Assembly: GCF_023055435.1 (NCBI RefSeq)
Contig: NW_025964383.1
Location: 10,168,001 to 10,232,000 of the forward strand
Reading direction: 5' to 3'
Source: Haliotis rufescens
Taxonomy: Eukaryota
Length of the DNA: 64,000 bases
Shown here: positions 6,387 through 59,328 of the stretch, piece by piece
Layout of the letters: each line of letters starts with the position of its first letter
Numbering within the stretch: the first letter of the stretch is position 1
Notes under the pieces: model-generated
Database searches by the model: none
Told to the model about the DNA's origin: nothing
The model's input: the letters and a program-made list of their open reading frames with translations, nothing else
Made by a program: the position numbers and the translations under genes

Positions 6387-6404
6387 GGCAATTTTACAGT
6401 TGTC
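6387..6404 (+). promoter_or_regulatory. Conserved 3'UTR stem-loop (gene 1)
   Basis: GGCAATT-TTAC-AGTTGTC, 12 nt after the stop; homologues follow all seven stops. Confidence 0.6.
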
Positions 6405-8643
6405 GAGGTTAAGGAGGTGTAATGAACATGTGCATGTGATGTATACATTATAAATGGATTCTGGGAATACACGAAAATGGCACATTGATAACAATTTGAA
6501 ACCATCAAGCTTTGTGTCGCAATTAATACCCTGACACAAACACAAATGTGAATAATTGTGTGTGAGTAGTTTGTAAAAAGGCAAGAACAATTAAATTTTG
6601 GTAGTTAATAATGTATTCCGAGGCAAATGATACCTTTAATGTCTGTCTACCAGCGTGTGTGAATACACGTTTGTATGTCAATCTGGCTATGAGCCGACTC
6701 TTTCTTCATACTTCGTCGTTAGATGTCCCTCCTTATTACTTCGTGCCAAGAACATTACATTTTATGTCATTTATATATATTCGACAATATAATACATGCA
6801 TAGTTAGACAGAATATTTCAAATAAATTATTTGTTTAATATAACTTTAGAATATGTCAGCATTGGAAACGAATGTGAAACTTCGGTTTATGAGATTCGAC
6901 AAGTTTGACCATCAGTATGTTACGTAATGTATTTCACAGTTTCTCTACTGTCATCTTAATCAATTAAACATACTTGGTTGATAGAACCTATTACTCCCTT
7001 CATAGTCATTAAGATGCGTTGCACATACCGTTAAATAACTTCCAGTGAACTTTAAGCAACATTTTGAATGTGTAATGTTATACATATGTGTGTTAGAAGA
7101 AGATTATATCTGATTCATATGCATTCAGCATGATTGAAAAATAATTTTTTTGTCGTCCAAACTCGCCAGATAGTTTATAAGATATAGTTAGGAGATTGTG
7201 ATTTTAAACGTGTCTTGTCTTTGGTGTGGACATTGTCTTGGATTAACAACCGTTCCAATTGTTGACGATAATCTTAAACTTTCTTCAAATAAAACATATC
7301 TTCTGTGACAAGGACAGATGTGTGTTTTTATATCTGTTCAACCCTGATCAAGTGTATTACACGGTCGGGTCAGCAACGTTGGATATCTGTTTATAACGTA
7401 CCCGCTACATGGTCAACAATGATACTTTTGATATTGCCGTTTAGGTATTAAGTAACCGTATGTTGCAGTTTTTCAATATATCGCATAATTTAGCGTGACA
7501 CAAAGCCAAAAACATAGCATTTCGGTGTTCGTATGCCAGTCGTTAAGGTCGGATGATAATGAGAAGAGCATACAAGTTTATAGCTGACGTCAACACGCTA
7601 TAGAGTACACTTTCCTGACATAACTATAGACAACTTTAGATACACGTGATCTCATCTTGCAAGAATGGAGTAATTATTGAGGACGTACAGAATAACCTAA
7701 CATGTTCTCCCATCCTGACTCAGTGCCGTTTCCCAAACAAAATGAAAACAGATGTCATTTACATTGTTTGATAGTTGTATCGGATGTATGTACAACTTCA
7801 TAGTTATTAATTTGTACCTGGATTCTGGATGTCAACTAAAGAAACGGAGACACGGTAAAGCAGTGTGTTTCAGATAGAAAGTATTTGTGTTAACGCTGGG
7901 CCAGACCTTAGACTACAAAAGCAAATGTGTAATAACAAGGCGTGACTCCGTGTTTGAGTGGTGATAAGGTGACTGCTGTCGCAGTGTGTTTTCATAAAAT
8001 AACCTTCACATACCCTTGAGTAAATTGATCTTCTCCATTATATTATAACATTTAATGACGTTTTTTCAATACATGAATTAAATTCACAGGTGTATGCATA
8101 TGGAAGATGTTACCAGTGAATGACCAGAAATATTTTCTTTCCGCTTACTTGTGTTGTAGGCGAAGGTAAAAGAGCCCATCAATACAGGTTTTCAACACTG
8201 TTATGCTTTCCTTACATTTCTTTACAAAGGACATCGATTTCACATGACTGTTTATCAATGCGCATGCATAGAGTACGTCCTATAAATACCGAGTAAATTC
8301 TATAGATAGCATATATGTCATCATTCCACGAAAGTGAGACACTGTAAGTGACATCCATATAAGGCAATATTTGTACTCCTGGTGAACATTCAGTCAACAG
8401 GTGTGTTATTCGTTGAGGACGTTGCCAGGATACGCTTCCTGATCACACATGCTGTGAGAGAAGGTGGAATATCTCGAGTACGTAAGTATATAAGACGGCT
8501 ACTCTTAATGAGTATTTATTGAAAAAGTCAGCAATACATATGAAACTATACAGAAACTGGGCAACATTATTCAAGCGTTGTCACGATGACCTAACAAATG
8601 AAAGTCTTGTTTCTATTTAGATACTTTCGGGTAATATACAGTA

Positions 8644-8799
8644 CTGTTTACAAAATAGCCCCTATCTCCATGTATCTACAAACCCCTCTCGTCATTTTTG
8701 ATTGTTTGCACCCTTACAATGCTGTTTACAAAATAGCCCCTATCTCCATGTATCTACAAACCCCTCTCGTCATTTTTGATTGTTTGCACCCTTACAATG
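8644..8799. repeat. 78-bp exact tandem duplication
   Basis: ctgtttacaaaatagcccc...cccttacaatg at 8644 and 8722. Confidence 0.92.
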
Positions 8800-8822
8800 C
8801 ACCGCGTCCACGTCAAGTTGAT

Positions 8823-8877
8823 TGTGACGTCACACCTGGTCCATAACACCTAGCGCTAGTATTCCCGGGGAAGCCCC
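8823..8877 (+). promoter_or_regulatory. Perfect CRE (TGTGACGTCACA, 8823-8834) plus kB-like GGGGAAGCCCC (8867-8877) upstream of gene 2
   Basis: Motif match about 1 kb upstream of the gene 2 ATG. Confidence 0.5.
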
Positions 8878-9830
8878 TGGCCTACCCTTTGTCCAAACCA
8901 CTATCACAATCACTGCATGCATTTTTCTTAAAAAGCAACAACAACAAAGGCAACAAATACACAAAATGATGAGGAACATGAACATACATGTGTAATATAC
9001 TCTGGATTGATAGCAATAATATGTCTAACATACCACAGCATGGTCATGCACGAGAACTATGTTTTGTATTGATTCAATGTATTACTACGCGAGGCCTATT
9101 TATTGTTATCAATGCAAATTCGTCTCGGTCGTGAGCGGACGTGAACGGTATATGTAAGGTTAAGATTATTAATATTAGGAACAGTTGTTGATTAAGTTTG
9201 TCTTACGAAGTATGTTTAATAAGATTCACTTTACTATCTGTACATGTACACAAGTGTGTGTCCAATTGCTGTTTTAATGTAGCTAATAACTAATTTGTGT
9301 GTGAGGGTGTGGGTGCGTGCGTCTGTATGCATGTATGTGTGTATGTAATGTATTCATGCAGCAGTGTGTGTCTGTGTGTGGATGTATGTATGATAGGTAT
9401 AGGGTACACGTTTGTACACGTGCCATATCTGTAAAAACTGTTGTAATGTGTTTGGTATCAAGGATACGTGTCTGGTCAGTCTGTCTGTCTGTCTGTCTGT
9501 CAAGTATATGTTAACCGTTTGTACACATGGCAGATATTGTAGTGCATTTGATGTAAAGGATAAGTGTCTGAAGTATATGTTAACCGTTTGAACACATGGT
9601 AGTTATGTTAAAACTGTTGTAGTGTGTTTGGTGTCAAGGAAGGCACTTCTATACATCATATCGCGCTCAAGATAGTCCACGTACCTGCATTAACAGAGAA
9701 TATAATTACATATTACAATTACATAGATATGCATAAGTGTCTGATAAGTCCTTCGCTTCCCAAAAGTTCGGAATCGGAAATTGATTTCGGCGATATCTAA
9801 TTGTAGTTTGTTTATGCTTCAGACTACAGT

Positions 9831-11674
9831 ATGGAGACGCTTGAGAAAATGTTCTTTGCTTCCATATCTATTTTGAACATAGCTGTAGGAATTGCAGTTA
9901 TTTGTCAAATGGCGCCACGACTGGCTGATCAGCAACCACATTTGCATCCTTCCACCTCCACTCAGAATATGAAGGAAGCAATTGACAAGGTCCGTACAAA
10001 CTTTTAAATATGTTTTCATTCATAACATTTAAAATTAATTATAGTAGTACTAATATACAACTTTTATTCTTGGAAATGATGATATGATATTACTAAATAG
10101 ACGGAATAAAGCGCCCATATATTCTATCATATGGATGGCAGTACATCACATTTTCTTTCAGGTTGCGAAGTGTAAATAATATTTTTAAAACAATAAGTTG
10201 TATATCGGGATATTGATAATATAATGCATGAAAGAATAATATACTTGATCTAAACAACATTTAAATGAGACACACCCCGAAAATGCAAAACGTCAAAACT
10301 CACTGGTATCTCTATTATTGTAGGCATACACGGAATGCCTACGAAAATTGCCAGACAGGAACACAAAGAAAAGTAATGGTAAGTTAAATATATTTTAACA
10401 CCTAGCACGTCATATTTGTACACGTAGCATCCTTTCTATTCCTAGAAATGTTGATGTCCAAATAAGTTATGCAAAATTGCAGTTTTCAATAAAAATCGTA
10501 TTCATTGCACATGTTCCTTATGCATAAGCGCGATTTTACTTTGGTTGGTTGGTTTGGTGTTTAACGCCGGTCTCAGCAATATTCCAGCTATATGACGGCG
10601 GTCTGTAAATAATCAAATCTGGACCAGACAATCCAGTGATCGATATCATCGATCTACGCGATTGGGATCAATGACATGCATCAACCAAGTTATAATTAGC
10701 GAGCCTGACCACCCGATCCCGTTAGTCGCCTCTCACGACAAGCATAGTCGCCTTTTAAGGCAATCAATGGTTGCTGAAGACTTATTCTATCCCGGATTTT
10801 CTATGGAGTTTTAATGTGTTACAGATGTAGGGAGAGAGTACATTCCCCCGCATCTTTACAGCCTACTGAAACCTGATGCATTCTACTCGGGGCTGAACAT
10901 CACTGACCTTGGCAAAGGTAAGGACCTGTCATCATATGATGTTGCACCACATGGGAATACAACGACAGCTAAGTACTGCGTTATAAACACCATATGGTCA
11001 TATGTAATACTTTCCTGTCAATTCGTTCTCACTGCTGACATCACACATTGGTCGAAGGAAATTGATCTCAGGAACAAATAAACAATTACCATGTTTTATC
11101 GGCTATACGTATCGTGTAAAACACGAAAGGTGGTTTATAGCTTTACATCGCCTACGTTTTTGGAATCTTATTTACGTTTTACAGATTCAAATTCATTCAC
11201 AAAAAAATAGGTATGTGCTAAATTTAAATTAATTCTTCAGAGCACCCCTATAAACTCACTCCTGCCAGAGGATGGGCCGCACAAACTATGGTCGGGCAAG
11301 AGAGACAAGTCTTGTACAACGGAATGCAGTATGAGAACGGGAGCATCATAGTCCCTGCAGCCGGTGTTTATGTCGTGTACAGCCATGTTACATTTAACAC
11401 TGAAGCATATCGTCACGATGACAAAGAGACTGACTTCTATCACCTCATAGTCCGCTATAATGCGGAGAAACAAGAGGAGAATATCGCACTTAAGAACGTA
11501 GTTATCGAGAATAGCTATGGGATGAGATTGATTGACGGGGATGGCTTGTTATCTAGTGACATCCGTGGAATACTGGAGCTCAATGCTGGGGATCAACTTC
11601 GTGTTGACTTATCAGGAGTATCGAAATTAAGCTCTGTTACGGATTGGTTTTACTTTGGCGTTTACATGATCTGA
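9831..11674 (+). CDS. TNF superfamily ligand, gene 2 (246 aa, most divergent); coding exons 9831-9989, 10324-10378, 10825-10917, 11241-11674
   Basis: METLEKMFFASISILNIAVGIAVIC; exon 3 LLKPDAFYSGL; exon 4 AGVYVVYSHVTF ... LELNAGDQLRV ... WFYFGVYMI*. 159+55+93+434=741 nt in frame. First donor GTCCGT is weak. Confidence 0.87.
10540..10800 (-). mobile_element. SINE/LINE-tail repeat family D in gene 2 intron 2
   Basis: tttaacgcc..ctcagcaatattccagctatatgacggcggtctgtaaataatc; related copies at 19515-19670 (-), 20058-20170 (-) and 27655-27807 (+). Confidence 0.7.
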
Positions 11675-11684
11675 AGTACCTTCT

Positions 11685-11703
11685 GGCGATCTAGTCGGTC
11701 GTT
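11685..11703 (+). promoter_or_regulatory. Conserved 3'UTR stem-loop (gene 2)
   Basis: GGCGATC-TAGTC-GGTCGTT, with a compensatory G-C replacing the A-U pair of the paralogs. Confidence 0.6.
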
Positions 11704-13282: not shown

Positions 13283-13525
13283 TTGGGGCACGAGTGGCCC
13301 AGTCGTCTGAGGCACCGCAGTTCGTTGTGTAGAGTTGCGCCCCTTGGGCACGCCAGGCACCTTTGAATGTGGGTTCGAATCCCGATTCACACCGATAATG
13401 TTTCTGGGTTTGTCAGCACCATCGTGGGTTTCACCGAAGTGGTAAATATCTGAGACCTCTTTCACTTCGGGCTTTCCTCCCACATTAAGCTGTTGTACCG
13501 TGAAATAACTGGAATACTGTCCATC
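13283..13525 (+). mobile_element. SINE family B (decayed)
   Basis: Aligns to 15-230 and 412-440. Confidence 0.75.
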
Positions 13526-13791
13526 AGTCAAAATACATGCGGTTTAATCTCAGTGATAATTTGTGTTCCGTTTTCTGCCGAGGCCCAGGTGTGCTTCCTG
13601 CTTTAGCCGAACAGGGAAACCAGCAACTCTTTCAATGCCTCATCCATACTTCTTGAATATCATTTTACAATTTCGAGATAAGTTTTTTCTGTATTTAGTA
13701 TTGCATTACTATAAGTTATATGTTATAAATTCATGTATTTCTTATATCCGCCTCGTAAACTCTACACATCACTTCTATTATTCGGGCATAC

Positions 13792-14259: not shown

Positions 14260-14536
14260 NNNNNNNNNNNNNNNNNNNNNNNNNNNNNNNNNNNNNNNNN
14301 NNNNNNNNNNNNNNNNNNNNNNNNNNNNNNNNNNNNNNNNNNNNNNNNNNNNNNNNNNNNNNNNNNNNNNNNNNNNNNNNNNNNNNNNNNNNNNNNNNNN
14401 NNNNNNNNNNNNNNNNNNNNNNNNNNNNNNNNNNNNNNNNNNNNNNNNNNNNNNNNNNNNNNNNNNNNNNNNNNNNNNNNNNNNNNNNNNNNNNNNNNNN
14501 NNNNNNNNNNNNNNNNNNNNNNNNNNNNNNNNNNNN
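14260..14536. other. Assembly gap (277 N) next to a (CT/CA)n microsatellite at 14537-14692
   Basis: Run of N. Confidence 1.
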
Positions 14537-14618
14537 TTCTCACGCACTTCCTCACTCTCTCTCTCCCCCACACACACTCTCCCTCTCACACACACACTCA
14601 CTCTCTCTCTCACACACA

Positions 14619-14658
<40 letters not shown>

Positions 14659-16887: not shown

Positions 16888-19379
16888 ATGCAAGCGACGA
16901 AAGCAGTCGTCGCTGCTGTGCTCGTCCTTAACATAGCTGTTGGAATCGCAGTTATTTGTGTTGTGGTGACTGTCGAGGAGGAACACCACAGGCCCCCTGC
17001 TGCAACACTCTGGAACAATGCCGAGCAGTTGAAGAAGCAGATCGACGAAGTACTAATTTTAAATGAAATTAATTAACTGAAACCCGCTCACAACTGTCAG
17101 TCGTAAATGCTATATTGTAGGCTGCACTGAACATTGTGCTGCAAACGTATGACTAAATAAATTTAACACGTATGAACATCTATATCCTTTAAAAGTATGT
17201 ATGTCCGTTAGTTGATCGTTCACATAAAACGATATCTGAAAAAAATAGATTAAAGATCACCATGTATCACCATCGATAGTAGGTGCTTCTCTAGGAGTTC
17301 ACATGTACGTATCCAATTCAGCATGCTATTTAAATATTTCCTCTTCCAAACAAAGAAAGAGTATCTCAATATTTACACTGGTCATTGCAGATTTATGTTG
17401 ATCCTCGGGAGACTCCGCATCACCCCCGAGGTAAGTGGGTTTTCCTGTGCTAGAGACATACACATTTTACTTAAAATCCATCTCAAACTCAATACATATA
17501 AACATGATGAAATATATATTAACAAAATGTGTTCCCTCTCTGCCATCGTTCACATGGCTTTACATATTGTGCCAACACGTTTATATAATGTAAATGGTAT
17601 AATTTGGCTAGTGTCGCCTAGTGTGCTATAATATATGTTTACATTCATACAGATCCACAAGCCATTACGTCACTAGATTATTGGAATATTCTGAAGCCCA
17701 TCGCATTTCTGACCGGACTTGACTTTGGCGAAAACAACGAAGGTAAACATGTTCTCATCTCATCTGCAGCATATGTTTCAAATCAGTTCAACATCGTTTT
17801 GTTGTAGGACAGTCACCGGTGTACGTTACCAGTGTACCATTCGAACCTTGTGTATGTGATTTCTTAATGTAAGCATTTATTATTAATATAACTGTTGTAT
17901 AACGTGTTAGACGGGCAATGGAAATGCGACTGAATCAGGAAATATTTCGAGGCGGTTACGAGTTTGCGTAGGGAAATAGTATCACAACCTTGAAATAACG
18001 AGTTTAGACAAGTCATACGTCAACAACGAACTTTTCTTGTCGGGAGGACCTAGCAATCAAATTTCAGTTCACGTCACCGCCACATGACGTACAAATTAAT
18101 GTAACACATGGACGTTTAATTAGAGACCCATGTTACAGTCTCAGAAAATAATTGAGTTCAGCTCTGTCCATTTTTTGGCAAATGTGTACACCACTATACC
18201 CAGTGAAAAAGTTCAGAAAAAAACTTCTTCATCCATGGGGCATTTGTCACTACAAACGTGGAGATGGGTGTAAAATGAAAGCAAATGTCATCTGAAGTTT
18301 ACTGAGAACTGTACTTAATAATATTTATGTGAAGTTTGGGGGATATGATATATTTCCAAGAAGTATGCATGAAGTTTTCAATAGTGAACCCATTCTCGCT
18401 GAAATATTCCATCAGCTTTTACCAACATCTTCCCGTTTTTGAAGTTTAACTATTACTTGAATTTCCTTTGGAGAAGGATGCGCTCACATGCGATAGTGAT
18501 TCATAAACACATGCCAATGATATACTCGGAATCATTCAATGGACTCTCCTTTCGGCAGCTATTTCTTACGAATATGGAAAGGGTTTTCCGGCGTTTGATT
18601 ATTTATGTGTATATGAATACATGCAGGAGGGATATCATATGATTGTTGAAATCATGTTCTGTCGATTCATGTTGGTAGTAACACGAACTCGTAACATTAT
18701 AACGGAGAATCAAACCCTTAATAGGGAATCGGAGTTATTGCATGGTTGACATCAAAGGAAATATGCCACTTCCATGCTACAAATGTGACTTACCAAGGAT
18801 TGGTTCAAAACAGTGTGATTATAATCTGAATGTAGATTTTCAGTCATATAATCCATATAGGCATAACTGAAATCATATCACACATGTATGAATATAGTTT
18901 GTGCATGATCACTTACTCTATGATATAGACATATATGTACCTGTGTTTTCTTGACAGATACGCCTACAAACACTGCAATAAGGAACTGGATACCGTTTGT
19001 TGGCCCAGGCAGACAGTACTTGTACAATGGTATGACATACGAAAACGGAAGTGTTTCTATCCCAACCGCTGGAGTGTATGTCGTCTATTCCCATGTAAAA
19101 TTTTACACAGAAAAAAATCATCGCGTTGATCCCGAGCTTGATTTTCATCACAGCATAACACGATACAATGCTGTGTCTCAACAGACAGAGACTGTATCGG
19201 GGAACATAGTGTGTGAGAACAAGAACAATGTCATTGACGGAGCAAGTCTGGAATACTCCAGTGACATCCACAGTTTGGTGCAGCTGAATGCTGGAGACCT
19301 GGTCATAGTAAATGTGTCGCATTTGGAACTGTTAAAGTCGGACAAGGATTGGCATTATTTTGGAGCATATATTATTTGA
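16888..19379 (+). CDS. TNF superfamily ligand, gene 3 (237 aa); coding exons 16888-17049, 17391-17430, 17653-17742, 18958-19379
   Basis: MQATKAVVAAVLVLNIAVGIAVIC; IYVDPRETPHHPR; ILKPIAFLTGLDF; THD ending WHYFGAYII*. 162+40+90+422=714 nt in frame. Confidence 0.9.
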
Positions 19380-19392: not shown

Positions 19393-19410
19393 GGCAATCT
19401 AGAAGTTGTC
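19393..19410 (+). promoter_or_regulatory. Conserved 3'UTR stem-loop (gene 3)
   Basis: GGCAAT-CTAGAA-GTTGTC, 13 nt after the stop. Confidence 0.55.
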
Positions 19411-29692: not shown

Positions 29693-30787
29693 GTACTTTT
29701 ATCATGTTCATATTATTGTTGCTGATTTTCAGAATACCATAATTTATACAATTTGTTAGGTGTGTAATCATTTTACAGATATACGAAGACCGATTGAAAA
29801 TAATAATCGATAATGATAATGGTACTCATGAACGGAAAGGTAAGTGGATGAAACCAAAATAATTCTTCTTAAATAATCTGCTTTACCAAAGCAATAATTC
29901 AGCTGTAATAATTGTCTTAAGACTGCTTGGTAAATACACATGTTAAAGGTTTTGGTAACTTCGTATGCATTGATGCAGAAAATAATGCAAAAAATGCAGT
30001 TGAATGATTTGTTTTGATCATGGCTCTACTATGTCAATTGCGTGTGTTATAAGGCAATGTTTAAATCTGATACAGGTGCAAGGCAACCGAGCACGTCAGT
30101 GGCATTCTTGAACCTGCTGAAACCTATAGCATATCTTACTGGACTGGACTTCCTTGGGCACATTGGTAAGATAACCAGCTCACTTTTGTTGGGTCAAATA
30201 AGTACTATTTACTGTACTGAGGAAAAAACACACATATTTTGATGTAATTATTCTCACACAATCGATCTGCGTTGCGTTCTTCTTCAGATTTGTGTGCATA
30301 TGTATTGTTTATCCTAACCAATAATGCATGTTTCTGTGACCAATAATACATGGTCTTAATTTCAGAGAATGTAAATGACACATCTATAAAAACATGGGTG
30401 CCGTTTGTTGGACCAGGGAGACAACTCTTGTATAACGAGATGCGGTATGAAAATGGCAGCATTATAATCCCCGCCACGGGTGTGTATGCTGTATACAGCC
30501 ATGTCAAGTTCTACACAGAAAGGAATCGTCGTGGAGATACAGAAACTAATTTCCACCATTCCATAATGCGATACAATGCATTAAAACAGACGAATAAAAC
30601 TGCACTTGCTGACGCAGTGTCTGAGAATAAAAACGACATCATTGACGGCGCTAGCCTGGAATACTCCAGTAACATCCATGGACTCCTGCAACTCAATGCT
30701 GGTGATCAGTTGGTTGTTAAAGTATCAAGGATAAACCCACTGAGGCATGACAGAGACTGGCATTACTTTGGTGTATATATGATTTAA
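29407..30787 (+). CDS. TNF superfamily ligand, gene 4 (238 aa); coding exons 29407-29550, 29779-29839, 30076-30165, 30366-30787
   Basis: MERIGKVGCASLLLLNIAVGIAVIC; LLKPIAYLTGLDF; THD ending WHYFGVYMI*. 144+61+90+422=717 nt in frame with canonical GTAAG donors. Confidence 0.92.
29630..29689. repeat. (AAT)n microsatellite in gene 4 intron 1
   Basis: Read directly from the sequence. Confidence 0.95.
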
Positions 30788-30799
30788 ACACTACATCTA

Positions 30800-30818
30800 G
30801 GCAATCTAACAGGTTGTT
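30800..30818 (+). promoter_or_regulatory. Conserved 3'UTR stem-loop (gene 4)
   Basis: GGCAATC-TAACA-GGTTGTT, 12 nt after the stop. Confidence 0.6.
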
Positions 30819-31321: not shown

Positions 31322-32326
31322 TATGTTATTTAAGTTATATTCAAACTGTATTAAGACGAATATATTCAAGATCTGTCCATTCATCTACGTGTACAGTGGT
31401 TTGAAGATAACATTTATCATTCTCTTTGCTGAAGGGATTTTCTATTTACATTGTAGTTTTGCTTATAGAAATGTGTCATGTTGCTGTTTGTAAACTGATA
31501 TCACTCTGATTTCGTACTCGGATGTAGCTATGTGTATGTCATCATCAGGACGTAAGTTGTTTTTGTCATCATGGAATTTGCCCCTCAGCTGATGAACGAC
31601 AACAAATACAACTTCAATCCTTAATTGAATATATTGAGTATTAACGAATATTACCACTTACAACAGGATACTCATTGAAACATATTTTGTTTTGTTTGTT
31701 TTATTTTTAATATTCATTGTAATGATTTGCCTCCAAATCTACTTTAACATGTACATCTGTTGGTTTTTGTTTAAAATAAATGACTAAAACAGTATTATTC
31801 CTACTGATGAATACGTATTTAGTTGTTTACAAATATTTCTTACACGACCTTCTAAGTAAACATGCGATATATACAATGTAAATATTGTATTCGGCAACTA
31901 TGGTACTGTCTACCCACCGTTAAAGGGTGCTTGGTACCTGTAAACTTGCTTCACTTTGTAACGTTATGAAAGGCCGCGTGTGCCCTAAACAAACGTGACG
32001 TCTCATAGACCCTCGTATGTACATATATAAAGTCCGAAGAACATCACATTAAGACGTTATTTGTGTGGCTTGAGATTATTATTCACTTTTGTGCAGAGAG
32101 TAAGTATTCGGCAGGTAACGTTGATTTTTTTCAGCGCATTAAAATAAACTGTGACGGTAGAATTTATACCATATTGCCTCTTGTTGGTTAACCTCCAGTG
32201 AGTAGTTAGGTGTCCTAGTGTTTGAGGACTTCTCTCATTATACACTGGTACTGAACGTAAGGCACCATGCAGCCAATCTGTAAGGTGAGACATACTTACT
32301 TAGAGTCTTAATGCGTCCAATCTCGA

Positions 32327-34752
32327 TGATCATCGCCTGTCCGTGTATACCGTCAGATCTTATAATCGCCTGTCCGTGTATACCGTCAGGTCTGATCATC
32401 GCCTGTCCGTGTACACCGTCAGATCTTATAATCGCCTGTCCGTGTATACCGTCAGGTCTGATCATCGCCTGTCCGTGTATACCGTCAGATCTTATAATCG
32501 CCTGTCCGAGTATACCTTGAGGCTCGATCATCGCCTGCCCGAGTACACCGATGGGTATGATCATCGCCTGTTCGAGTATACCGCCATGTCTGATCATCGC
32601 CTGATCGAGTATACCGTTAGGTCTGATCATTGCCTGTTCGAGTATACCGCCATGTCTGGTCATCCTGTGTCCGAGTATACCGTCAGGTCCGATCATCGCC
32701 TGTCCGAGTATACCTTCAGGTCCGATCATCGACTCTCCGAGTATAGCGCAAGATCTGATCATCGCCTGTTCGAGTGTACCGCCAGGTCTGATCATCGCCT
32801 GTTCGAGTATACCGCCAGATCTAATCATCGCCTGTTTGAGAATACCGTCAGGTCTGATCATCGCCTGTCCGAGTATACCGTTAGGTCTGCTCATCGCCTG
32901 TTCGAGTTTACCGCCAGGTCTGATCATCGCCTGTCCGAGTATACCGTTAGGTCTGATCATCGCCTGTTCGAGTATACCGCCAGGTCTGGTCATCGTGTGT
33001 CCGAGTATACCGTCAGGTCCGATCATCACCTGTCCGAGTATACCGTCAGGTCCGGACATCGACTCTCCGAGTATACCGCCAGATCTGATCATCGGTTGTC
33101 CGAGTATACCGTCAGGTCCGGACATCGACTCTCCGAGTATAACGCCAGGTCTGGTCATCGGTTGTCCGAGTATACCGTTAGGTCTGCTCATCGCCTGTTC
33201 GAGTATACCGCCAGGTCTGATCATCGCCTGTCCTAGTATACCGCCAGGTCTGATCATCGCCTGTTCGAGTATACCGTTAGGTCTGATCATCGCCTGTTCG
33301 AGTATACCGCCAGGTCTGATCATCGCCTGTCCGAGTATACCGTTAGGTCTGATCATCGCCTGTTCGAGTATACCGCCATGTCTGGTCATCCTGTGTCCGA
33401 GTATACCGTCAGGTCCGATCATCGCCTGTCCGAGTATACCTTCAGGTCCGATCATCGCCTGTTCGAGTATACCGCCAGGTCTGATCATCGCCTGTCCGAG
33501 TATAGCGCAAGATCTGATCATCGGTTGTCCGAGTATACCGCCAGGTCTGGTCATTGGTTGTCCGAGTATACAGCCAGGTCTGATCAACGCCTCTCCGAGT
33601 GTACCGTCAGATCTGATCATCGGTTGTCCGATCATACAGCCAGGTCTGCTCATCGCCTGTCTGAGTATACCGCCAGGTCCGATCATCGCCTGTCCGAGTA
33701 TTCCGCCAGGTCTGATTATCGCTTGTCCGATAATACCGTCAGATCTGATCATCGCCTCTCCGAGTATACCGTCAGGTCTGGTCATTGTCTGTTCGAGTGT
33801 ACCGCCAGGTCTGGTCATCGGTTGTCCGAGTATACCGTCAGGTCTGGTCATTGTCTGTTCGAGTGTACCGCCAGGTCTGGTCATCGGTTGTCCGAGTATA
33901 CCGTCAGGTCTGGTCATTGTCTGTTCGAGTGTACCGCCAGGTCTGGTCATCGGTTGTCCGAGTATACCGCCAGGTCTGATCATCGCCTGTCCGAGTATAC
34001 GGTCAGGTCCGATCATCGGTTGTCGGAGTATACCGCCAGGTCTGATCATCGCCTGTCCGAGTATACCGCCAGGTCTGATCATCGGTTGTCCAAGTATACC
34101 GTTAGGTCTGATCATCGCCTATCCGAGTATACGGTCAGGTCCGATCATCGGTTGTCGGAGTATACCGCCAGGTCTAATCATCGCCTGTCCGAGTATACGG
34201 TCAGGTCCGATCATCGGTTGTCGGAGTATACCGCCAGGTCTGATCATCGCCTGTCCGAATATACCGCCAGGTCTGATCATCGCCTGTCCGAGTATACCGC
34301 CAGGTCTAGTCATCGTTTGTCCGAGTATACCGCCAGGTCTTATCATCACCTGTCCGTGCATACCGCCAGGTCTGATCATCGGTTGTCCAAGTGTACCACC
34401 AGGACCGATCATTTCCTATCCGAGTATGCCGCCAGGTCTGATCATCGCCTGTCCGAGTACACCGCCAGGTCTGGTCATTGCATGTCCGAGTATACCGCCA
34501 GGTCTGGTCATCGGTTGTCCGAGTATATCGCCAGGTCTGATCATCGCTTGTTCTCTGCCTATGTGCCTGGTCTTATCATCACCTGTCCGAGTATACCGCC
34601 AGGTCTGGTCATCGGTTGTCCGAGTATACCGCCAGGTCTGGTCATCGGTTGTCCGAGTATACCGCCAGGTCTGATCATCGCCTGTCCGAGTACACCGCCA
34701 GGTCTGGTCATTGCCTGTCCGAGTATACCGCCAGGTCTGATCATCGCTTGTT
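32327..34752. repeat. 33-bp CpG-rich minisatellite, array 1 (~73 units)
   Basis: Consensus CCGAGTATACCG[CT]CAGGTCTGATCATCGCCTGT. Confidence 0.95.
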
Positions 34753-35614
34753 CCCTGCCTATGTACCATGTGTCAAGCGAGATTTACCGACATATCCTCT
34801 ATGTGGTACTGTCAAGGCAGGTAAGTGAGTTAAATACTGACACAGCTCAAATGAATAACATCTTGCAGCAAATGTTGAAGTAGAAATGGTAACAGCGTTA
34901 GAATTAATTAATCATCAAGATTATTGTATTTTCTTTGAGAGGCATTTAGAAGTTGGAGTACTAAGTAAGGATAAGATATATGGATGAACAACTTCTTTAT
35001 TACAATAAGGAGCGACGTTTCGGTAGTCTAGTTCTAGTTTCGAATCACGAAGTCGAAGCCTGTTCTTAAACTGATCTCCCCATGAACAATGTGGTGGCAC
35101 CCCATGTCTACGAAGAGTAGCGATGGATCCCACATGGTGAGCTACGAGCTGTCGTTATATATATATATATAATCCGGGAAAAAACATAAACTTCACAAAC
35201 AGAAAGTATCTCTAATTAAATACTCACATGGTGTAGGGTGCATAAACTCAGCAAATGTGTTCACATATACGTACAATTTCAAAACGTTATATTTATATCC
35301 TAAATGGCAAAAGAAACGTACATTTTTATGATTCACATAATTGAAGTTAATTTTACCTAAGCACTGGCCGCATGTATTACATTTGAATGACCTCATAGCA
35401 CAATTGTATCCTAGCACCAGTTAGGACCATTTCCTCCTGGTGGGTCACAGATATTATTTTATTCTTATCCAACTTTCAAATGGCACTCAAAGACACATGA
35501 AACCCAGAGCAAGTTTAATTTTTCTCATCAGGAAATTAGTTGTACGCGAAGATCATTTTATGCAAAACGTTTAATTCTTCTTTGAACGCTGTCTGGATAT
35601 AAAGTGTATATCTA

Positions 35615-41337: not shown

Positions 41338-42696
41338 ATGAAAAGGATTGTGAAAGCTGTGTGTTCATCACTTCTTGTGTTGAATATAGCAGTAGGCATT
41401 GCAGTTATTTGCCATGTGTTATCCAGTATTCACGATACAGGGATGAGTAACACAGGAAGTTTGAAACAAGAAATAAGCAAGGTAAGCAGACATTGACCTT
41501 GTCATTTAAATTCCAGAGTACAATACCTGTAATATTAGATTTGATTTGATAACACTATTAAGTAATTGTCTACTTTTGTTCATATTAGTGTTGCAGATTG
41601 TCATTGTGTAAACTAATGTATTTGTCTAATCATGTTACAGATATATGAAGAACGAGTGCAATTAATGAACGATAATGATTATGATGATCATAAACGGAAA
41701 GGTGAGTAGATGAAATAATAAACAATGTCTTAAAATCTGCTTCATCCCAAATAAAGATTCAGCTGTAACAACTTTCAAGTTTGCATTATAAATAAACATG
41801 TTAAAGGTCATGATAACAACGTACGCAGTGAAAGCTGACACAAATAAGCCGTTTAAGCCATATACAATAAAATGTAGAAATGTTGTTGAATGATTCGTTT
41901 TGATCATGATGCTACGATGAAAAGTTTGTGTGATATAAAGCTATGTTTAAAACTGATACAGGTGCAAGGCAACCGAGCTCGTCAGTAGCATTCCTGAACC
42001 TACTGAAACCTGTAGCATATTTCCCTGGACTTGAGTTCCGTGGACACATTGGTAAGATATCAAACTAACTTTCATTGAGTCAAATGTACACTTATATCAT
42101 TCCCTGTATTGTTGTAACGTATTAGGGGATGTGTTTTCCTTACACGATCTTGAGACGTTGCGTTCCCCTTCAGATGTGTTTGTCCACGTTTTGTTTATCT
42201 CGCTGTAATTAATGTCTAACAAGCAATGATTCCATCAATAATGCATGTCCCTATGAACAACTTTTTTTCAGGAAGGAAAGACAATGACACACCGATAAGA
42301 ACATGGGTGCCGTTTGTTGGTCCGGGGAGACGACTCTTGTATAACGGGATGCGGTATGAGCATGGCAGCATCATAATCCCCGCCACGGGTGTGTATGTTG
42401 TATACAGCCATGTTAAGTTCTACACAGAAAGGAATCGTCGGGGAGATACAGAAACTGATTTCCACCATTCCATAATGCGATACAATGCACTAGAACAGAC
42501 GAGTACAACTGCACTTGCTGACGCAGTGTCTGAGAATAAAAACGACATCATTGACGGCGCTAGCCTGGAATACTCCAGTGACATCCATGGACTTCTGCAA
42601 CTCAATGCTGGGGATCAGTTGGTTGTTAAAGTATCAAGGATAAACCCATTAAGGCATGACAGAGACTGGCATTACTTTGGTGTATATATGATTTAA
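41338..42696 (+). CDS. TNF superfamily ligand, gene 5 (239 aa); coding exons 41338-41481, 41641-41701, 41962-42051, 42272-42696
   Basis: MKRIVKAVCSSLLVLNIAVGIAVIC; LLKPVAYFPGLEF; THD ending WHYFGVYMI*. 144+61+90+425=720 nt in frame. Confidence 0.92.
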
Positions 42697-42708: not shown

Positions 42709-42727
42709 GGCAATCTAATAGGTTGTT
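42709..42727 (+). promoter_or_regulatory. Conserved 3'UTR stem-loop (gene 5)
   Basis: GGCAATC-TAATA-GGTTGTT, 12 nt after the stop. Confidence 0.6.
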
Positions 42728-45846: not shown

Positions 45847-46324
45847 TGATCATCGCCTGTCCGTGTATACCGTCAGATCTTATAATCGCCTGCCCGAGTA
45901 CACCGATGGGTATGATCATCGCCTGTCCGAGTATACCGTCAGGTCTGATCATCGCTTCTCCGAGTGTACCGCCAGGTCTGATCATCGCCTGTCCGTGTAT
46001 ACCGTCAGATCTTATAATCGCCTGTCCGAGTATACCGATGGGTATGATCATCGCCTGTCCGAGTATACCGTCAGGTCTGATCATCGCTTCTCCGAGTGTA
46101 CCGCCAGGTCTGATCATCGCCTGTCCGAGTGTATACCCTCAGATCTTTTAATCGCCTGTCCGAGTATACCACCAAGTCTGGTCATCGGTTGTCCGAGTAT
46201 ACAGCCAGGTCTGGTCATTGCCTGTCCGAGTATACCGACAGGTCTGGTCATCGGTTGTCCAAGTATACCGCCAGGTCGAATCATCGGTTGTCCAAGCATA
46301 CCGCCAGGACTGATCATTGCTTGT
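45847..46324. repeat. 33-bp minisatellite, array 2 (~14 units)
   Basis: Same unit and the same 5' and 3' flanks as array 1. Confidence 0.95.
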
Positions 46325-46913: not shown

Positions 46914-46976
46914 TCAAATTATAATATATGCTCCAAAATAATGCCAAGCCTTTTCAGGCTTTAACAGTTCCAAATG
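46914..46976 (-). pseudogene. Duplicated THD C-terminal fragment HLELLKPEKAWHYFGAYIII*
   Basis: Minus-strand translation matches the last ~20 residues of genes 3/6. It lies ~300 bp downstream of the gene 6 stop. Confidence 0.8.
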
Positions 46977-47249
46977 TTCAAGTTTAAATATCGGACATCT
47001 AAATGTATAGAACAACTTCATTTCAGGTTTGTGACCCCAGTTTGCAAACATAACAAAAAAATCGAATTGGCATTTTCAAGTGTGTCAGTATATATATTCA
47101 TGTCTGTGAAAATATACATTGGTTCCATATTTATTCATGTACGCATCTTAAAGCATTAGGCATCATACGTAATTTGAATTTCATTTCAAACCTTGACACA
47201 TCTAAATGCACTACGGAATATACACCATTTGAATTTATTTTAAAACGTT

Positions 47250-47267
47250 GACAACCACTGGATTGCC
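47250..47267 (-). promoter_or_regulatory. Conserved 3'UTR stem-loop (gene 6)
   Basis: Minus strand GGCAATC-CAGT-GGTTGTC, 13 nt after the stop. Confidence 0.6.
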
Positions 47268-47280: not shown

Positions 47281-48881
47281 TTAAATCATATAGACTCCAA
47301 AATAATGCCAATCCTTGTCAGGCTTTAACAGTTCCAAATGCGACACATTTACTATCACCTGGTCTCCAGCATTCAGCTGCACCAAACTGTGGATGTCACT
47401 GGAGTATTCCAGACTTGCTCCGTCAATGACATTGTTCTTGTTCTCACACACGATGTTCCCCGATACAGTCTCTGTCTGTTGCGACACAGCATTGTATCGT
47501 GTTATGCTGTGATGGAAATCGAGCTCGGGATCAACGCGATGATTTTTTTCTGTGTAAAATTTTACATGGGAATAGACGACATACACTCCAGCGGTTGGGA
47601 TTGAAACACTTCCGTTTTCATACTCCATGTTCTTGTGCAAGTATTGCACTGATCCAACGAAATCTATCCAATTCCGTACTGCAGTGTTTGTAGGTGTATC
47701 TGTAAAACAGAAGTAGAGGAGTGACAAAAACATAGAAATATATGTGCGATACGATTGCATTCATGGGTATGTTGGCTTTCTCAGGAAAACGAATATTTGT
47801 TTTGTTATCACTTTCACTTTATTTCGAACAAATCGCTGATCAGTGTGTATCAAGGGGTGGGGCCTCCAATACCTCGTTTAAGGGGCGGGGTTACTACAAT
47901 ATAAGTTACTACAAGTCCAGCTCTCTGCACCACAAAATACTTTCTTATATACGTTGACTGACGAGAGCAATGTGACTGACATGAAGTATCGAATATCTGC
48001 CCCTCGAAATATCTCGTGATGCGCTCGTTATCCAATTCACCAATTAACACTTTTTTCCAGTAATGATAAATTCTTATTCCGCACTGTTAGAGATAACAGG
48101 GTTCGACTCTATCATGAAATCTTATTAAAATGGTAATATTGTTTGATTGATACATTTGATATCCGGTAACACTAGTACTGTTAACATACAACTGCCCTGC
48201 AACAAAACGAAGCTGGAGGTATTTGAAATATATGCTGATAAGATGAGAAGATCATACCTTCGTCGTTTTCGCCGAAGTTAAGTCCTGTCAGAAATGCGAT
48301 GGGTTTCAGAGTATTCCGATATTCTAGTGACGTGGTCTGTTGTTCACCTGTATTAATTTAAATTCATGACAGCAGATCACCATTTATGCAATGCTTCGCA
48401 TGGTGGTAATATGTATACATTCTTATGACAAAGGAAGAAATAATTGTTTTCGGACTTCATATATCAGAAGCACTCCCCTACCCTACTCTACACAGATATC
48501 TATGCGGTCAGCATAGTACCTCTGTCACAGGCCAGCGCCATGTTATGATTTATCACATCTTACGCAGTCCATTCAAAATACAGCGTACTTTTTCATTTTT
48601 GACAATTCTGAACATGTTGCTAAACATATGTGATCGAATGGTTATCTTTCACTAAGTAAATATTCCTTAACGTGAAAAAACATTTCCATTTGCATAGTTT
48701 ACATTTGCTGAAGGACTCCACGTGCTGTCATGGAAGCCCAACGGAGAAATAGCTGTACGACCGTTTTGATGCATAAAGATAAATTGTTATGAACCTGGCT
48801 GTCGAAGTTGTAGAAGCATATCTATATAATTATGCAAAACAATATGTAAAGAGGGTTAACTTCTTTATTATGTTGCCACGG

Positions 48882-48915
<34 letters not shown>

Positions 48916-52566: not shown

Positions 52567-52577
52567 GGGGATTTCCC
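52567..52577. promoter_or_regulatory. NF-kB site GGGGATTTCCC between divergent genes 6 and 7
   Basis: Consensus match in the shared upstream interval. Confidence 0.45.
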
Positions 52578-53934: not shown

Positions 53935-54155
53935 ATATTATATGAGTCGTGCCGAAATTCCGGTATTTCTCTCGCTTTCGCTCGGAAAATACCAAAATAT
54001 AATGCTGTATTATTTATTACCGAAGAAAATGTCTACATATAGAGACGAGTTTGAGGACAGCAAGTCACAACAGCAGCGGGACAACAATTTATCAAATGAC
54101 GGAATTTAGACAGTCGTGTCGTAAACATAGTATGACACGAACACTCATATAATAT
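53935..54155. mobile_element. Small inverted-repeat element
   Basis: ATATTATATGAGT..CGTG versus CACGAACACTCATATAATAT, with internal ctcgctttcgctcg. Confidence 0.3.
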
Positions 54156-55496
54156 ATTGTATATATGTTCCTGTTATTGTCCGGGAGGAACATTTTACAG
54201 GATAAAGTAAGAAAATCAAGTATCTGTTAAACCTGCACTTTATGCGCTTCTTTACACGCTTATGCTTGCCATTACGTTATGTGTAAAAGGATTTTGTGTA
54301 AATAACTTCCATGCGCTCGGAGCGGTTGTGTACTTGTAGCCTGATGATAAATCGTTCGCCAGTCATGCCCAAAACACAGGTTCGATTCCCAACATGGGTA
54401 AAATGTGTGTATGTGTGTGTGCATTGCTGGTGTTCCTCGACGTGATGTTGGTGAACGATTGCTGGAAGAGGCATACAAAACACATTCCCTCACTACATAC
54501 TGTACTTGTTTCCATATTTGCGTATTTTTGCAAAGCGTTATCTTCATATAATGAAACGTATGTTTTATGATTCACATTGCTGAACTTGATTTTACCTGCG
54601 CACTGCTACTTAACGCATTACACCAATCAGTAAGATTCGATAATTTTCCTCAGTGTTCAAGATATACCCCCAGCGTGTATTTGCACCGAATACTGCAGTT
54701 AATCTCCAGTAATTGGAGTAAACATGGCGCATGATGTTTGCAGGGTAACATGCGCTTTGAATGGCGTTAGATTACAGCACACTGCATTCTCTGCTTGAGT
54801 GTTGTGAAAGGCAATCTATTTATAGACATTCCGGATGGAAAAACCAACTGAGCAAACACTACTATTTATAGGCATCGGGCATTTACACCGTGAAGATCGA
54901 GAATAGATCCATATATATAAAATCCTTTTGCATTGTCACTTCTGTAAATGATGTGAATCCAGTAACAGGACTGGTGAGTACTAATTCCATATTCATTATT
55001 GTTTTATTTATTTGACTTTACAGGGTAATTTAATAGTTACTCTGACTGTCAACCAAATAGTTGTCAAGCTGAAATTGGTATGCATTTCATCGTTGCATAT
55101 ATATTACGTTATGCTCTCCAATTAGCAGTTCAAGATTATGTCATACATATTTAGTTTTCTATTTAAATTAATTTCATCATAATGGTATGATGGTCTATTT
55201 ACTGTGTTGTTGGAATGCCAATTCCTTGATGATGCTCATTGTAACCGATAGTCAAGATGATACTTTTTTTTAAATATGTACTTAGAAAATCCATCATATG
55301 TAGAAGAAAATAGTCTTGATCGAAGTTTGATTAAGGTGGGCTATATCTACATTTCGTCATCTATAATTATCTTGAGTTATACTCTGGGATACTTGGACAT
55401 GCATTGTGTATTACATATTGCGATGAGTTATCATACCATTATACGTAAATACCGTTTTACATGAAGACTTCTACGAGGATGAGGTTGTACTCGCAC

Positions 55497-56788
55497 ATTA
55501 CATGTGTTATCTCGGGACAGATGGAGCGGATTGGTGCTTGTACATGTAGCTTACTTGTGTAGTATGTAGTTGTATGGTATGTCTATTACAAGCATATTAC
55601 ATGTGTTATCTCGGGACAGATGGAGCGGATTGGTGCTTGTACATGTAGCTTACTTGTGTAGTATGTAGTTGTATGGTATGTCTATTACAAGCATATTACA
55701 TGTGTTATCTCGGGACAGATGGAGCGGACTGGTGCTTGTATATGTAGCTTACTTGTGTAGTATATAGTTGTATGGTATGTCTATTACAAGCACATTACAT
55801 GTGTTATCACGGGACAGATGGAGCGGATTGGTGCTTGTACATGTAGCTTACTTGTGTAGTATATAGTTGTATGGTATGTCTATTACAAGCATATTACATG
55901 TGTTATCTCGTGACAGATGGAGCGGACTGGTGCTTGTACATGTAGCTTACTTGTGTAGTATATAGTTGTATGGTATGTCTATTACAAGCATATTACATGT
56001 GTTATCTCGGGACAGATGGAGCGGACTGGTGCTTGTACATGTAGCTTACTTGTGTAGTATATAGTTGTATGGTATGTCTATTACAAGCATATTACATGTG
56101 TTATCTCGTGACAGATGGAGCGGACTGGTGCTTGTACATGTAGCTTACTTGTGTAGTATGTAGTTGTATGGTATGTCTATTACAAGCACATTACATGTGT
56201 TATCTCGGGACAGATGGAGCGGACTGGTGCTTGTACATGTAGCTTACTTGTGTAGTATATAGTTGTATGGTATGTCTATTACAAGCATATTACATGTGTT
56301 ATCTCGGGACAGATGGAGCGGACTGGTGCTTGTACATGTAGCTTACTTGTGTAGTATATAGTTGTATTGTATGTCTATTACAAGCATATTACATGTGTTA
56401 TCTCGGGACAGATGGAGCGGATTGGTGCTTGTACATGTAGCTTACTTGTGTAGTATGTAGTTGTATGGTATGTCTATTACAAGCATATTACATGTGTTAT
56501 CTCGGGACAGATGGAGCGGACTGGTGCTTGTACATGTAGCTTACTTGTGTAGTATGTAGTTGTACGGTATGTCTATTACAAGCACATTACATGTGTTATC
56601 TCGGGACAGATAGAGCGGACTGGTGCTTGTACATGTAGCTTACTTGTGTAGTATGTAGTTATATGGTATGTCTATTACAAGCACATTACATGTGTTATCT
56701 CGGGACAGATAGAGCGGACTGGTGCTTGTACATGTAGCTTACTTGTGTAGTTAATAGTTGTATGGTATGTCTATTACAAGCATATTAC
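55497..56788. repeat. 99-bp tandem repeat, 13 copies
   Basis: catgtgttatc recurs at 55501, 55600, 55699 ... 56689. Confidence 0.95.
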
Positions 56789-57765
56789 CAACAGACGGAT
56801 GTCGTTACCCACAGATTACCTTCAAATTATCAGAGGTACATATATACGCAATGTATATTTTTTGTTTGTTGGATTGGTGCTTATGGGGAATGGATGAATG
56901 CAGATGGCTTTTATTTTATCTGGGAACGGATGGGTGCAAGTAGCTGACATATTCATTGATATGGAGTCATTTTGCGATGAAAAAATTGTTCACTCCAATC
57001 AACCGGGAACGAATGCTGGTGGATGGTGGCATGTTTACTTCACAAAAAGGATTATTGCAAGATGTTAATGAGGAATATATTAAGGCTCATAGTTATAATG
57101 TAACAAGAAAGAATATATGTGGTTTTACAGCTGTAATTGAAAAAGGTAATCTCCATACATAATCCCAGGCCTCTACAGGATATCAATAGTCGGTCCCTAA
57201 GTAGATTACCTGTATCTTATATATAATGTGATGATTGGTAAATGTAACTTATATATTCAATATCTAGCAGAAGATGGACATGTTACATTATACGTATATG
57301 TCTGCAAGAGCTGGGTGAATACATGAAAGTTACATGTATATTATATATGTCCATATTGACGATTAATTTTATCTGGAAGAGGGTAGGAGGGTAACTATGT
57401 TATTACAATGATTTGAAGGGACGCATGTGGATGAGGGAGGCGTGTCAGATTAGTGTGAGAGAAGAGACAGATGTGATGATTTACATTGTATTAACACGTA
57501 ATCATGACAAACTAAGAAACAAATGTGGAACTTGAACCAACATCCATACATTAACCCTGCACAGCGAATAACGGCACCTTAAACAAATGTCCCATGTAGT
57601 TAATTTTAATGATCTATAATATCATATGACATTCGGGTTGTAGAACGTATCATGCAACTCCAGCGCCTTAGACCGCTGGCCAACGTATGTTCCTGACTTT
57701 TAACATAATAATACGCCATTTTGCGTTCCAGATTTGGGCAGCATCGAAAAGACTGAGAGTCATTC

Positions 57766-59297
57766 ATGGCAAAGATTGACCTGGTTGTGTGTGCGTCACT
57801 TCTTCTTTTGAACATTGCAGTAGGCATTACGGTTATTTGCCTTGTTGTATCCAGAAAGCACGACACGCAGATAAGTAACACAGAAAACTTGAAGCAAGAA
57901 ATCAGCAAGGTAAGCTGAAACATTGAGTTTGATTTATAAATTTTAGAGTACAAAAACCTTGAATGTTTTGTTATACCGTAAGCGTCTTATTTTGTAAGTG
58001 TTCATACTATTGTTGCACATTGTCAGCACACCGTGGATTATTCCATTTATAAACTAATATATGTATGTTTACTAATCATTTTTCAGATTTATGAAGGACT
58101 AAAAATAACGAACGGTCATGATGATGATGGTGATCATGAACAGAAAGGTGAGAAAGAATCTGATCAAATAGTAACAATTCTTGCCACATCAAAAACAACC
58201 ATCCAGCTGTACCTGTCAAGTTTGTATTGGAACTAAACATGTAAAAGGTTTTGGTAATATCGTAAGCAGTTACAGATGAACAAAATAACCTGTTCCAATA
58301 CAGTCAACTACGGTTATAACGAACACCCGTATAACGAACTGACGGATATAACGAACTTACTTTTTTGGTCCCGACCATTTGCTGTAGTTATGCTGTATAT
58401 ATGCTTATTACGAACTACGGTTATAACGAACTGAGTCCCCTTGAGTTCGTTATAACCGTAGTTTAATGTATGTAGAAATGTCTTTGATAGATTTGTTTTG
58501 ATCATGAGTTTGCGATGTCAAGTGCGTGTGTTTTTAGACCATGTTTAAAACTGATACAGGTGCAAGGCAACCGAGCTCATCAGCAGCATTCCTGAACCTA
58601 CTGAAACCTGTAGCACATTTCCCTGGACTTGAGTTCCGTGGACTCAATGGTAAGATATCTAACTAACTTTTGTTCAGTCAAATGTACAAGTATATTATTT
58701 ACTGTATTGATGTAAAGTATTAGGTGATGTATTTTCCTTACACGATCTTGAGACGTTGCGTGCCCCTTCAGATGTGTGTGTCCACGTTTTGTTTATCTCG
58801 CTGTAATTAATAACTAACAAGCAATGATTCCACCAATATGAATATGTCCCTATGAATAACTTTTAATTTCAGGAACGACAAGAAATGACACACCAATAAG
58901 AACATGGGTGCCGTTTGTTGGACCAGGGAGACGACTCTTGTATAACGGGATGCGGTATGAAAATGGCAGCATCATAATCCCCGCCACGGGTGTGTATGCT
59001 GTATACAGCCATGTCAAGTTCTACACAGAAAGGAATCGTCGGGGAGATAACGAAACTGATTTCCACCATTCAATAATGAGATACAATGCACTAAAACATA
59101 CGAATAAAACTGCACTTGCTGACGCAGTGTCTGAGAATAAAAACGACATCATTGACGGCGCTAGCCTGGAATACTCCAGTGACATCGATGGACTTCTGCA
59201 ACTCAATGCTGGGGATCAGTTGGTTGTTAAAGTATCAAAGATAAAACCACTGAGGCATGACAGAGACTGGCACTACTTTGGTGTATATATGATTTAA
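57766..59297 (+). CDS. TNF superfamily ligand, gene 7 (239 aa); coding exons 57766-57909, 58087-58147, 58560-58649, 58873-59297
   Basis: MAKIDLVVCASLLLLNIAVGITVIC; LLKPVAHFPGLEF (compare KPVAHV of vertebrate TNF); THD ending WHYFGVYMI*. 144+61+90+425=720 nt in frame. Confidence 0.92.
58301..58468. mobile_element. Same MITE family, independent insertion in gene 7 intron 2
   Basis: TA|CAGTCAACTACGGTTATAACGAAC...GTTCGTTATAACCGTAGTTTAATG|TA; absent from the equivalent intron of genes 4 and 5. Confidence 0.8.
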
Positions 59298-59309
59298 ACG
59301 CTACATCTA

Positions 59310-59328
59310 GGCAATCTGATAGGTTGTT
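59310..59328 (+). promoter_or_regulatory. Conserved 3'UTR stem-loop (gene 7)
   Basis: GGCAATC-TGATA-GGTTGTT, 12 nt after the stop. Confidence 0.6.

Follow-up and report, generated by a model that had tools for sequence, protein, structure and literature searches.

The question raised by the locus described here is whether a small hairpin, which follows the stop codon of every tumour necrosis factor (TNF) ligand gene in a stretch of Haliotis rufescens DNA, is a control element of the corresponding mRNAs. The stretch, hereafter the window, comprises 64,000 nt (NW_025964383.1:10,168,001-10,232,000; locus label G000:C605:10168001-10232000) and carries seven compact TNF-ligand genes with open last exons. 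The restraint of TNF through elements within the 3′ untranslated region (3′UTR) of its mRNA is central to vertebrate immunity; to our knowledge, almost nothing is known about the control of invertebrate TNF mRNAs, despite the greatly expanded TNF families of these animals. Probably the hairpin is a control element, so far undescribed, of these TNF mRNAs, and we consider it fairly likely that it acts as a selected, sense-strand 3′UTR stem-loop of one abalone TNF subfamily which tunes mRNA stability or translation.

The last exons of all seven genes match the Pfam TNF family (PF00229) with E values of about 1e-15. A first-pass annotation of the window had reported seven hairpins 10-13 nt past TNF stop codons, and all seven are present where it had placed them (Table 1). 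Each is predicted to consist of a 7-bp stem, in which pairs 2, 3, 5 and 6 are fixed, and a free loop. A pair between the outer U and A of the loop is possible in genes 4, 5 and 7, which would lengthen the stem to 8 bp and leave a triloop (AAC, AAU and GAU, respectively), and in gene 3 a C.A mismatch at pair 7 leaves a 6-bp stem with the hexaloop CUAGAA. Tabulation of the pairs bore out the pattern given by the first-pass annotation at pair 4 (A-U in six genes, G-C in gene 2) and at pair 7 (C-G in five genes, U-A in gene 1, unpaired in gene 3), and added that pair 1 is also variable in the window, being either G-C or G.U. It was also correct in stating that gene 7 ceases to resemble genes 4 and 5 shortly past the hairpin, the homology stopping at 59334-59337, 6-9 nt beyond it.

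Several searches indicated that the motif is specific to TNF genes. The pattern GGCRATY-N3-7-RGTYGTY has exactly seven matches in the 64 kb, counting both strands, and every one of them lies at a TNF stop. Across the genome, the same strict pattern occurs at background level, with 467 matches in 1.33 Gb against 576 for a reversed control, which corresponds to about 0.02 expected per window; the motif is thus not abundant. A covariance model (R1), built from the five copies with a 5-nt loop, returned TNF copies only among genome-wide matches of at least 32 bits, and the next-best genome matches (27.9 and 26.9 bits, E 3-5) were not downstream of open reading frames (ORFs). A metagenome scan gave no match. 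With Rfam 15, the sole match in the whole window at the gathering threshold was a transfer RNA (tRNA; 30.6 bits against a gathering score of 29), and a search of two hairpin regions at E values up to 10 yielded chance-level small nucleolar RNA and microRNA matches far under the gathering score. No report of such an element was found in the searchable literature, so that the earlier description of the element as new holds for Rfam and for that literature.

The distribution of the hairpin was examined by a six-frame TNF scan of the whole genome, which gave 82 matches, with the 3′ flank inspected for 70 of these. Intact copies were found at five loci outside the window (L014, L024, L026, L032 and L035), and the hairpin is present at about 12 of the approximately 80 TNF loci of the genome. 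L024 and L032 are gene 1-like with an intact hairpin. In L014 and L026, on contig C168, position 4 is a G, and the resulting G.U pair stands midway between A-U and the G-C seen in gene 2. L035 is a very divergent paralogue 7 kb outside the window, with an intact hairpin 21 nt past its stop; position 1 is here an A, giving an A-U pair 1, and the stem can be extended by one C-G pair. Together, the copies fall into five lineages, A to E (Table 1). The GGCRATY/RGTYGTY motif is missing from all other TNF subfamilies among the 70 of 82 TNF matches with inspected flanks, and the hairpin is therefore a property of one Haliotis TNF subfamily and not of abalone TNFs generally. Relatives at the protein level occur in H. 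cracherodii, H. rubra, H. asinina and H. diversicolor, with distant ones in Gigantopelta aegis.

The case for selection is carried by the contrast between the hairpin arms and their surroundings. Comparison of lineages A to E with one another gave a proportion of synonymous differences (pS) of 0.61-0.86, the number of synonymous substitutions per site (dS) being at least 1.3 or undefined. Synonymous sites are thus saturated, which implies that neutral sequence has been randomised between the lineages. When aligned on the hairpin, the flanks (10 nt upstream and 60 nt downstream) show 30% identity, which equals chance, as against 80-83% for the arms, and the 5′ arm is the sole 8-mer, with one mismatch allowed, common to all five lineages in the first ~300 nt past the stop. 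Gene conversion is rejected because the spacer and the downstream flank around the 18-19 nt block are random in identity. Sequence comparison hence argues firmly for purifying selection on the hairpin since the split of the five lineages, and we regard its designation as a selected element as firm.

The pattern of change within the arms points to a helix. The arms pair in the same register in every lineage, and the variable arm columns are 1, 4 and 7 only, in both arms, so that they are mutual pairing partners, a coincidence with a chance of 1 in 35. Pair 1 occurs as G-C, G.U or A-U, pair 4 as A-U, G.U or G-C, and pair 7 as C-G or U-A, and gene 2 shows changes in both arms together. Counted by script on hand-registered arms, 48 of the 49 pair cells are canonical, a figure matched by just 40 of 5040 permutations of the 3′ columns; per-pair shuffles on the same arms gave p = 0.018-0.025, and sliding of the register lowered pairing from 100% to 21-61%. 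The loops (UUAC, UAGUC, CUAGAA, U[AAC]A, U[AAU]A, CAGU, U[GAU]A and UAAUC) vary in length (3-6 nt) and in sequence, and do so even where the genes are near-identical, as with genes 4, 5 and 7. In a 210-nt native context at 15 and 37 °C, the predicted mean pair probability of the stem was 0.62-1.0 in the nine of nine copies tested, with folding z-scores of -1.2 to -3.6. At positions 2 and 6 the pair is invariably G.U, and these two wobbles make the element strand-specific; the earlier proposal that the stem works on the sense RNA only agrees with covariance-model scores of 32-39 bits for the sense strand against 8-10 bits for the antisense strand. It is likely that the element acts as a helix.

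A number of observations weigh against a selected stem-loop. Formal covariation is weak, the software shuffle control giving 175/500, which is not significant; this control was run on an alignment (A7) without L035 and with pair 7 of lineage A left as gaps, and with five lineages it is underpowered. A second covariance model (R2) was built from the alignment of R1, in which that pair of lineage A is likewise gapped. No structure came out of RNAalifold on MAFFT alignments, an artefact of the copies with a 4-nt loop being misregistered by one column (A2, A6). The stem is weak, at -3.2 to -6.1 kcal/mol at 37 °C for the hairpin alone, the lone mismatch stands at pair 7 of gene 3, and the eight fixed arm positions would also be compatible with two linear motifs. 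At one A-type locus, L034 (G000:C605:10127298-10128657), an intact and annotated ORF (P0017) is accompanied by a broken hairpin, the defect consisting of a 1-nt deletion and a G to T change (5′ arm TGCA-TT versus GGCAATT); the stop codon of this gene is TAA, not TGA, and L034 amounts to a natural knock-out of the stem. The hairpin is missing altogether from six very close paralogues (L015, L018, L031, L033, L036 and L037). Their homology to hairpin-bearing genes stops exactly at the stop codon, where the 3′ flank has been replaced by a low-copy sequence found behind those six genes only. Most of them keep open last exons, and one is annotated, which implies that the element is dispensable for gene survival.

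The hairpin-less six map to C605 9.97-10.15 Mb and C168 6.77-6.96 Mb, where they alternate with hairpin-bearing genes. An extra insertion of ~500 bp starts 65 nt into the replacement flank in all of them except L015; L036 is interrupted by an internal stop, and L037 is fragmentary. An impression by eye that the replacement flank was tRNA-like or of the short interspersed element type was dropped, since the flank is low-copy and confined to the six genes.

The points on structure bear on the proposal that the arms are linear motifs, serving as single-stranded sites to which an RNA-binding protein or small RNA attaches, with their complementarity incidental. The eight invariant arm positions, the GU-rich 3′ arm, the G.U pairs that were never turned into Watson-Crick pairs and the non-significant shuffle would all suit such sites. 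However, variation falls exactly on positions that pair with each other and remain canonical, the arms are not at a constant distance, so that a bipartite site would need to be flexible in this respect, and gene 2 alters both arms at once. We regard the proposal as doubtful. The label 'covarying' given to the stem in the first-pass annotation stands in so far as matched changes occur at partner columns, and was overstated in that double changes are seen at two pairs in the window and the shuffle control did not reach significance; on the sequences compared, covariation is suggestive.

If the stem-loop is selected as a helix, as we favour, a mechanism may be outlined as follows. The hairpin lies past the stop and upstream of the first poly(A) signal (AATAAA or ATTAAA) in every gene, with AATAAA beginning 11 nt past the hairpin in gene 6, and because of this position it is predicted to be transcribed and to be present in the 3′UTR of the mRNA. 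The spacing of 10-13 nt would put the stem just beyond a terminating ribosome, so that it could stay folded during translation. A fixed stem with invariant G.U pairs and a free loop would suit a trans-acting factor that reads the helix, with the wobbles as identity marks, and the fate of these cytokine mRNAs, in terms of stability or translation, may be set by the hairpin, in a functional parallel to the decay element of mammalian TNF mRNA rather than as a member of the same family. The earlier suggestion of a new post-transcriptional element of invertebrate TNF mRNAs is thus upheld in part: the element is real, selectively retained and specific to the sense strand, but it is not general, and the claim for invertebrate TNF mRNAs at large is narrowed by the small share of TNF loci that carry it and by its absence from six close paralogues.

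The obvious comparison is with the constitutive decay element (CDE) of mammalian TNF mRNA, the target of Roquin-1/2 and Regnase-1, which is likewise a short stem-loop (6-8 bp, against 7-8 bp in abalone) in the 3′UTR of a TNF-family mRNA. Mammalian Roquin reads the shape of the loop, gives minor weight to the sequence of the stem and discriminates against tetra- and pentaloops; its targets have a YRU triloop (AAU being of low affinity) or a GUUYUA-type hexaloop, with a preferred stem of 6-8 bp (PMC11609897). The upper stem and loop core of the CDE has been quoted as UUCYRYGAA (PMC11172303). The CDE is fixed by a YRU triloop on a UUC/GAA upper stem, its stem being otherwise of free sequence, and it lies far into the UTR, whereas the abalone element has a free loop of 3-6 nt, a fixed stem with two G.U pairs and a position 10-21 nt past the stop. 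No abalone copy contains the UUCYRYGAA core, and the YRU triloop, even when extended to AAU, is found in none of the copies except gene 5, which fits the low-affinity AAU variant; the earlier remark that the loops are unlike those of the CDE was therefore sound.

An abalone counterpart of the CDE, bound by a single Roquin or cut by a Zc3h12a-type RNase, would be in keeping with the TNF 3′UTR position, with a stem length within the range preferred by Roquin and with the U[AAU]A that gene 5 can form. The genome encodes one ROQ_II locus, a Roquin candidate (C594:36291084; E 1.4e-30), as well as Zc3h12a RNase loci, and the presence of these genes is permissive only. Against such a counterpart, loops of 3, 4, 5 or 6 nt and of variable sequence include the tetra- and pentaloops that the mammalian ROQ domain rejects, and the conserved part is here the stem sequence, which is of little concern to it. 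We consider a decay element of the Roquin/Regnase type improbable. The pattern of conservation is the opposite of what Roquin reads, and the reader of the abalone element is accordingly predicted to differ from Roquin.

Other known elements offer partial resemblances. The alternative decay element (ADE) of Ox40, which carries a Roquin hexaloop, is also a 3′UTR stem-loop of an immune mRNA, but it requires a GUUYUA-type hexaloop and only gene 3 can form a hexaloop (CUAGAA), which does not match. The histone mRNA 3′ stem-loop (RF00032), bound by SLBP, is similarly a small stem of conserved sequence soon past the stop, and recognition by SLBP through stem identity provides the nearest analogy for how the abalone element might be read. 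Unlike the abalone element, the histone stem-loop has a different sequence and an ACCCA-type flank, which is missing here, and the abalone copies show a variable loop length and poly(A) signals downstream; both the histone stem-loop and the selenocysteine insertion sequence were rejected for want of an Rfam match. The loop region of gene 6 reads CAGUG, as in the iron-responsive element (RF00037), but this applies to one copy only, with no C bulge and no Rfam match, and this identity was rejected because the resemblance is confined to the gene 6 loop. A motif borne by a transposable element was also considered and rejected.

The position of the hairpin close to the stop suggests a further possibility, namely that it acts on the terminating ribosome through stop efficiency, recycling, readthrough or termination-linked decay. 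The spacer is kept at 10-13 nt in four lineages despite a randomised spacer sequence, as would be expected if distance mattered, but it is 21 nt in L035, the stem is weak, and the stops include both TGA and TAA. Stimulators of readthrough or frameshifting combine a stable structure ~8 nt past the stop with a conserved in-frame extension; here the spacer is 10-21 nt, the reading frame past the stop is not the same in all lineages and genes 4 and 5 differ by a 1-nt indel, so that no extension peptide is conserved. A coding extension was rejected on the same ground, stop and hairpin not being in a constant frame to one another, and we see little probability in any element coupled to termination. 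That the hairpin has no function and was spread by recent duplication or gene conversion, or is a site at the DNA level, is very improbable, for although the genes are paralogues in tandem, their lineages show saturation at synonymous sites, the flanks on both sides of the block are of random identity, unlike a conversion tract, and the G.U wobbles leave a DNA palindrome that is imperfect and specific to one strand.

A selected sense-strand stem-loop may have a deeper origin. In a distant TNF subfamily (L021, L028, L029, L071 and L072; C168, 3.5-4.9 Mb), with the C-terminus ...PPSNFFGLYHAGE, a hairpin of the form GGCACUUUA-GAU-UAGGGUGUC lies 9 nt past the stop. It shares its lower four pairs (G-C, G.U, C-G and A-U) with lineages A and C; at pair 5 a C-G takes the place of A-U, and the loop is a GAU triloop. 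In L073, of the same subfamily, the hairpin is degraded by two disruptive changes. Model R2 scored this hairpin at 10.7 bits, with an E value of 2.7 over 86 kb, or ~0.01 when post-stop windows alone are counted, a restriction made post hoc, and kinship with the element studied here is to be taken as a lead and not as a finding. It is conceivable, though on the unlikely side, that the abalone hairpin is the founding case of a new class of lophotrochozoan cytokine-mRNA elements, defined by stem identity and tandem G.U pairs, read by a factor other than Roquin, independent of the CDE and older than the subfamily. In a further TNF subfamily, a perfect inverted repeat of 7 bp (ATGTGAC...GTCACAT; loop of 18 nt) starts 13 nt past the stop of L003 and L004 (contig C580); in L005 (C605) and L006 (C32) this repeat is broken by a single change.

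The remainder of the window contains several other features (Table 1). Genes 4, 5 and 7 are each followed downstream by an array of tandem repeats whose period is ~33 bp, and these arrays probably account for long overlapping ORFs on both strands. A short TNF-domain relic, with 68% identity to residues 204-225 of P0021, is found ~300 nt downstream of gene 6 and is not followed by a hairpin. A segment of ~175 bp occurs ~370 nt past the stops of genes 4 and 5 and again between the exons of gene 7, the latter position implying a rearrangement of the duplication unit. The single assembly gap listed overlaps no gene and no hairpin, and could conceal sequence.

Table 1. Positions of the TNF genes, hairpins and other features, and membership of the hairpin lineages (window coordinates unless a locus is named).
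Feature	Position	Strand	Remarks
Gene 1, TNF-domain last exon	5883-6374	+	PF00229 match
Gene 2, TNF-domain last exon	11288-11674	+	PF00229 match
Gene 3, TNF-domain last exon	18951-19379	+	PF00229 match
Gene 4, TNF-domain last exon	30350-30787	+	PF00229 match
Gene 5, TNF-domain last exon	42226-42696	+	PF00229 match
Gene 6, TNF-domain last exon	47281-47760	-	PF00229 match
Gene 7, TNF-domain last exon	58908-59297	+	PF00229 match
Gene 1 hairpin (lineage A)	6387-6404	+	GGCAAUU-UUAC-AGUUGUC; 12 nt past stop 6372-6374
Gene 2 hairpin (lineage B)	11685-11703	+	GGCGAUC-UAGUC-GGUCGUU; pair 4 G-C; 10 nt past stop 11672-11674
Gene 3 hairpin (lineage C)	19393-19410	+	GGCAAUC-UAGA-AGUUGUC; 13 nt past stop 19377-19379
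Gene 4 hairpin (lineage D)	30800-30818	+	GGCAAUC-UAACA-GGUUGUU; 12 nt past stop 30785-30787
Gene 5 hairpin (lineage D)	42709-42727	+	loop UAAUA; 12 nt past stop 42694-42696
Gene 6 hairpin (lineage C)	47250-47267	-	GGCAAUC-CAGU-GGUUGUC; 13 nt past stop 47283-47281
Gene 7 hairpin (lineage D)	59310-59328	+	loop UGAUA; 12 nt past stop 59295-59297
Lineage A			gene 1, L014, L024, L026, L032
Lineage B			gene 2
Lineage C			genes 3 and 6
Lineage D			genes 4, 5 and 7
Lineage E			L035
Distant-subfamily hairpin, L028	L028:1453-1479	-
Distant-subfamily hairpin, L021	L021:1456-1482
Distant-subfamily hairpin, L071 and L072	653-679 in each
Assembly gap	14260-14536		277 N; between gene 2 (end 11674) and gene 3 (start 16888)
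tRNA match	236-307	+	Rfam
~33 bp-period array	32327-34751		downstream of gene 4
~33 bp-period array	45847-46324		downstream of gene 5
~33 bp-period array	60364-61637		downstream of gene 7
Long overlapping ORFs	32238-34883	both
TNF-domain relic	46926-46991	-
~175 bp segment	31157-31326		past stop of gene 4
~175 bp segment	43066-43236		past stop of gene 5
~175 bp segment	58298-58473		between gene 7 exons

A compact and strongly selected stem-loop on one abalone TNF subfamily would provide a mutable handle on the control of TNF mRNAs in these animals. Natural 'knock-outs' are already present within the cluster, in the form of the paralogues with a replaced 3′ end and the one copy with a broken stem. 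Abalone are farmed and prone to disease, and markers of immune-gene regulation, of which this hairpin may prove to be one, are of practical interest.

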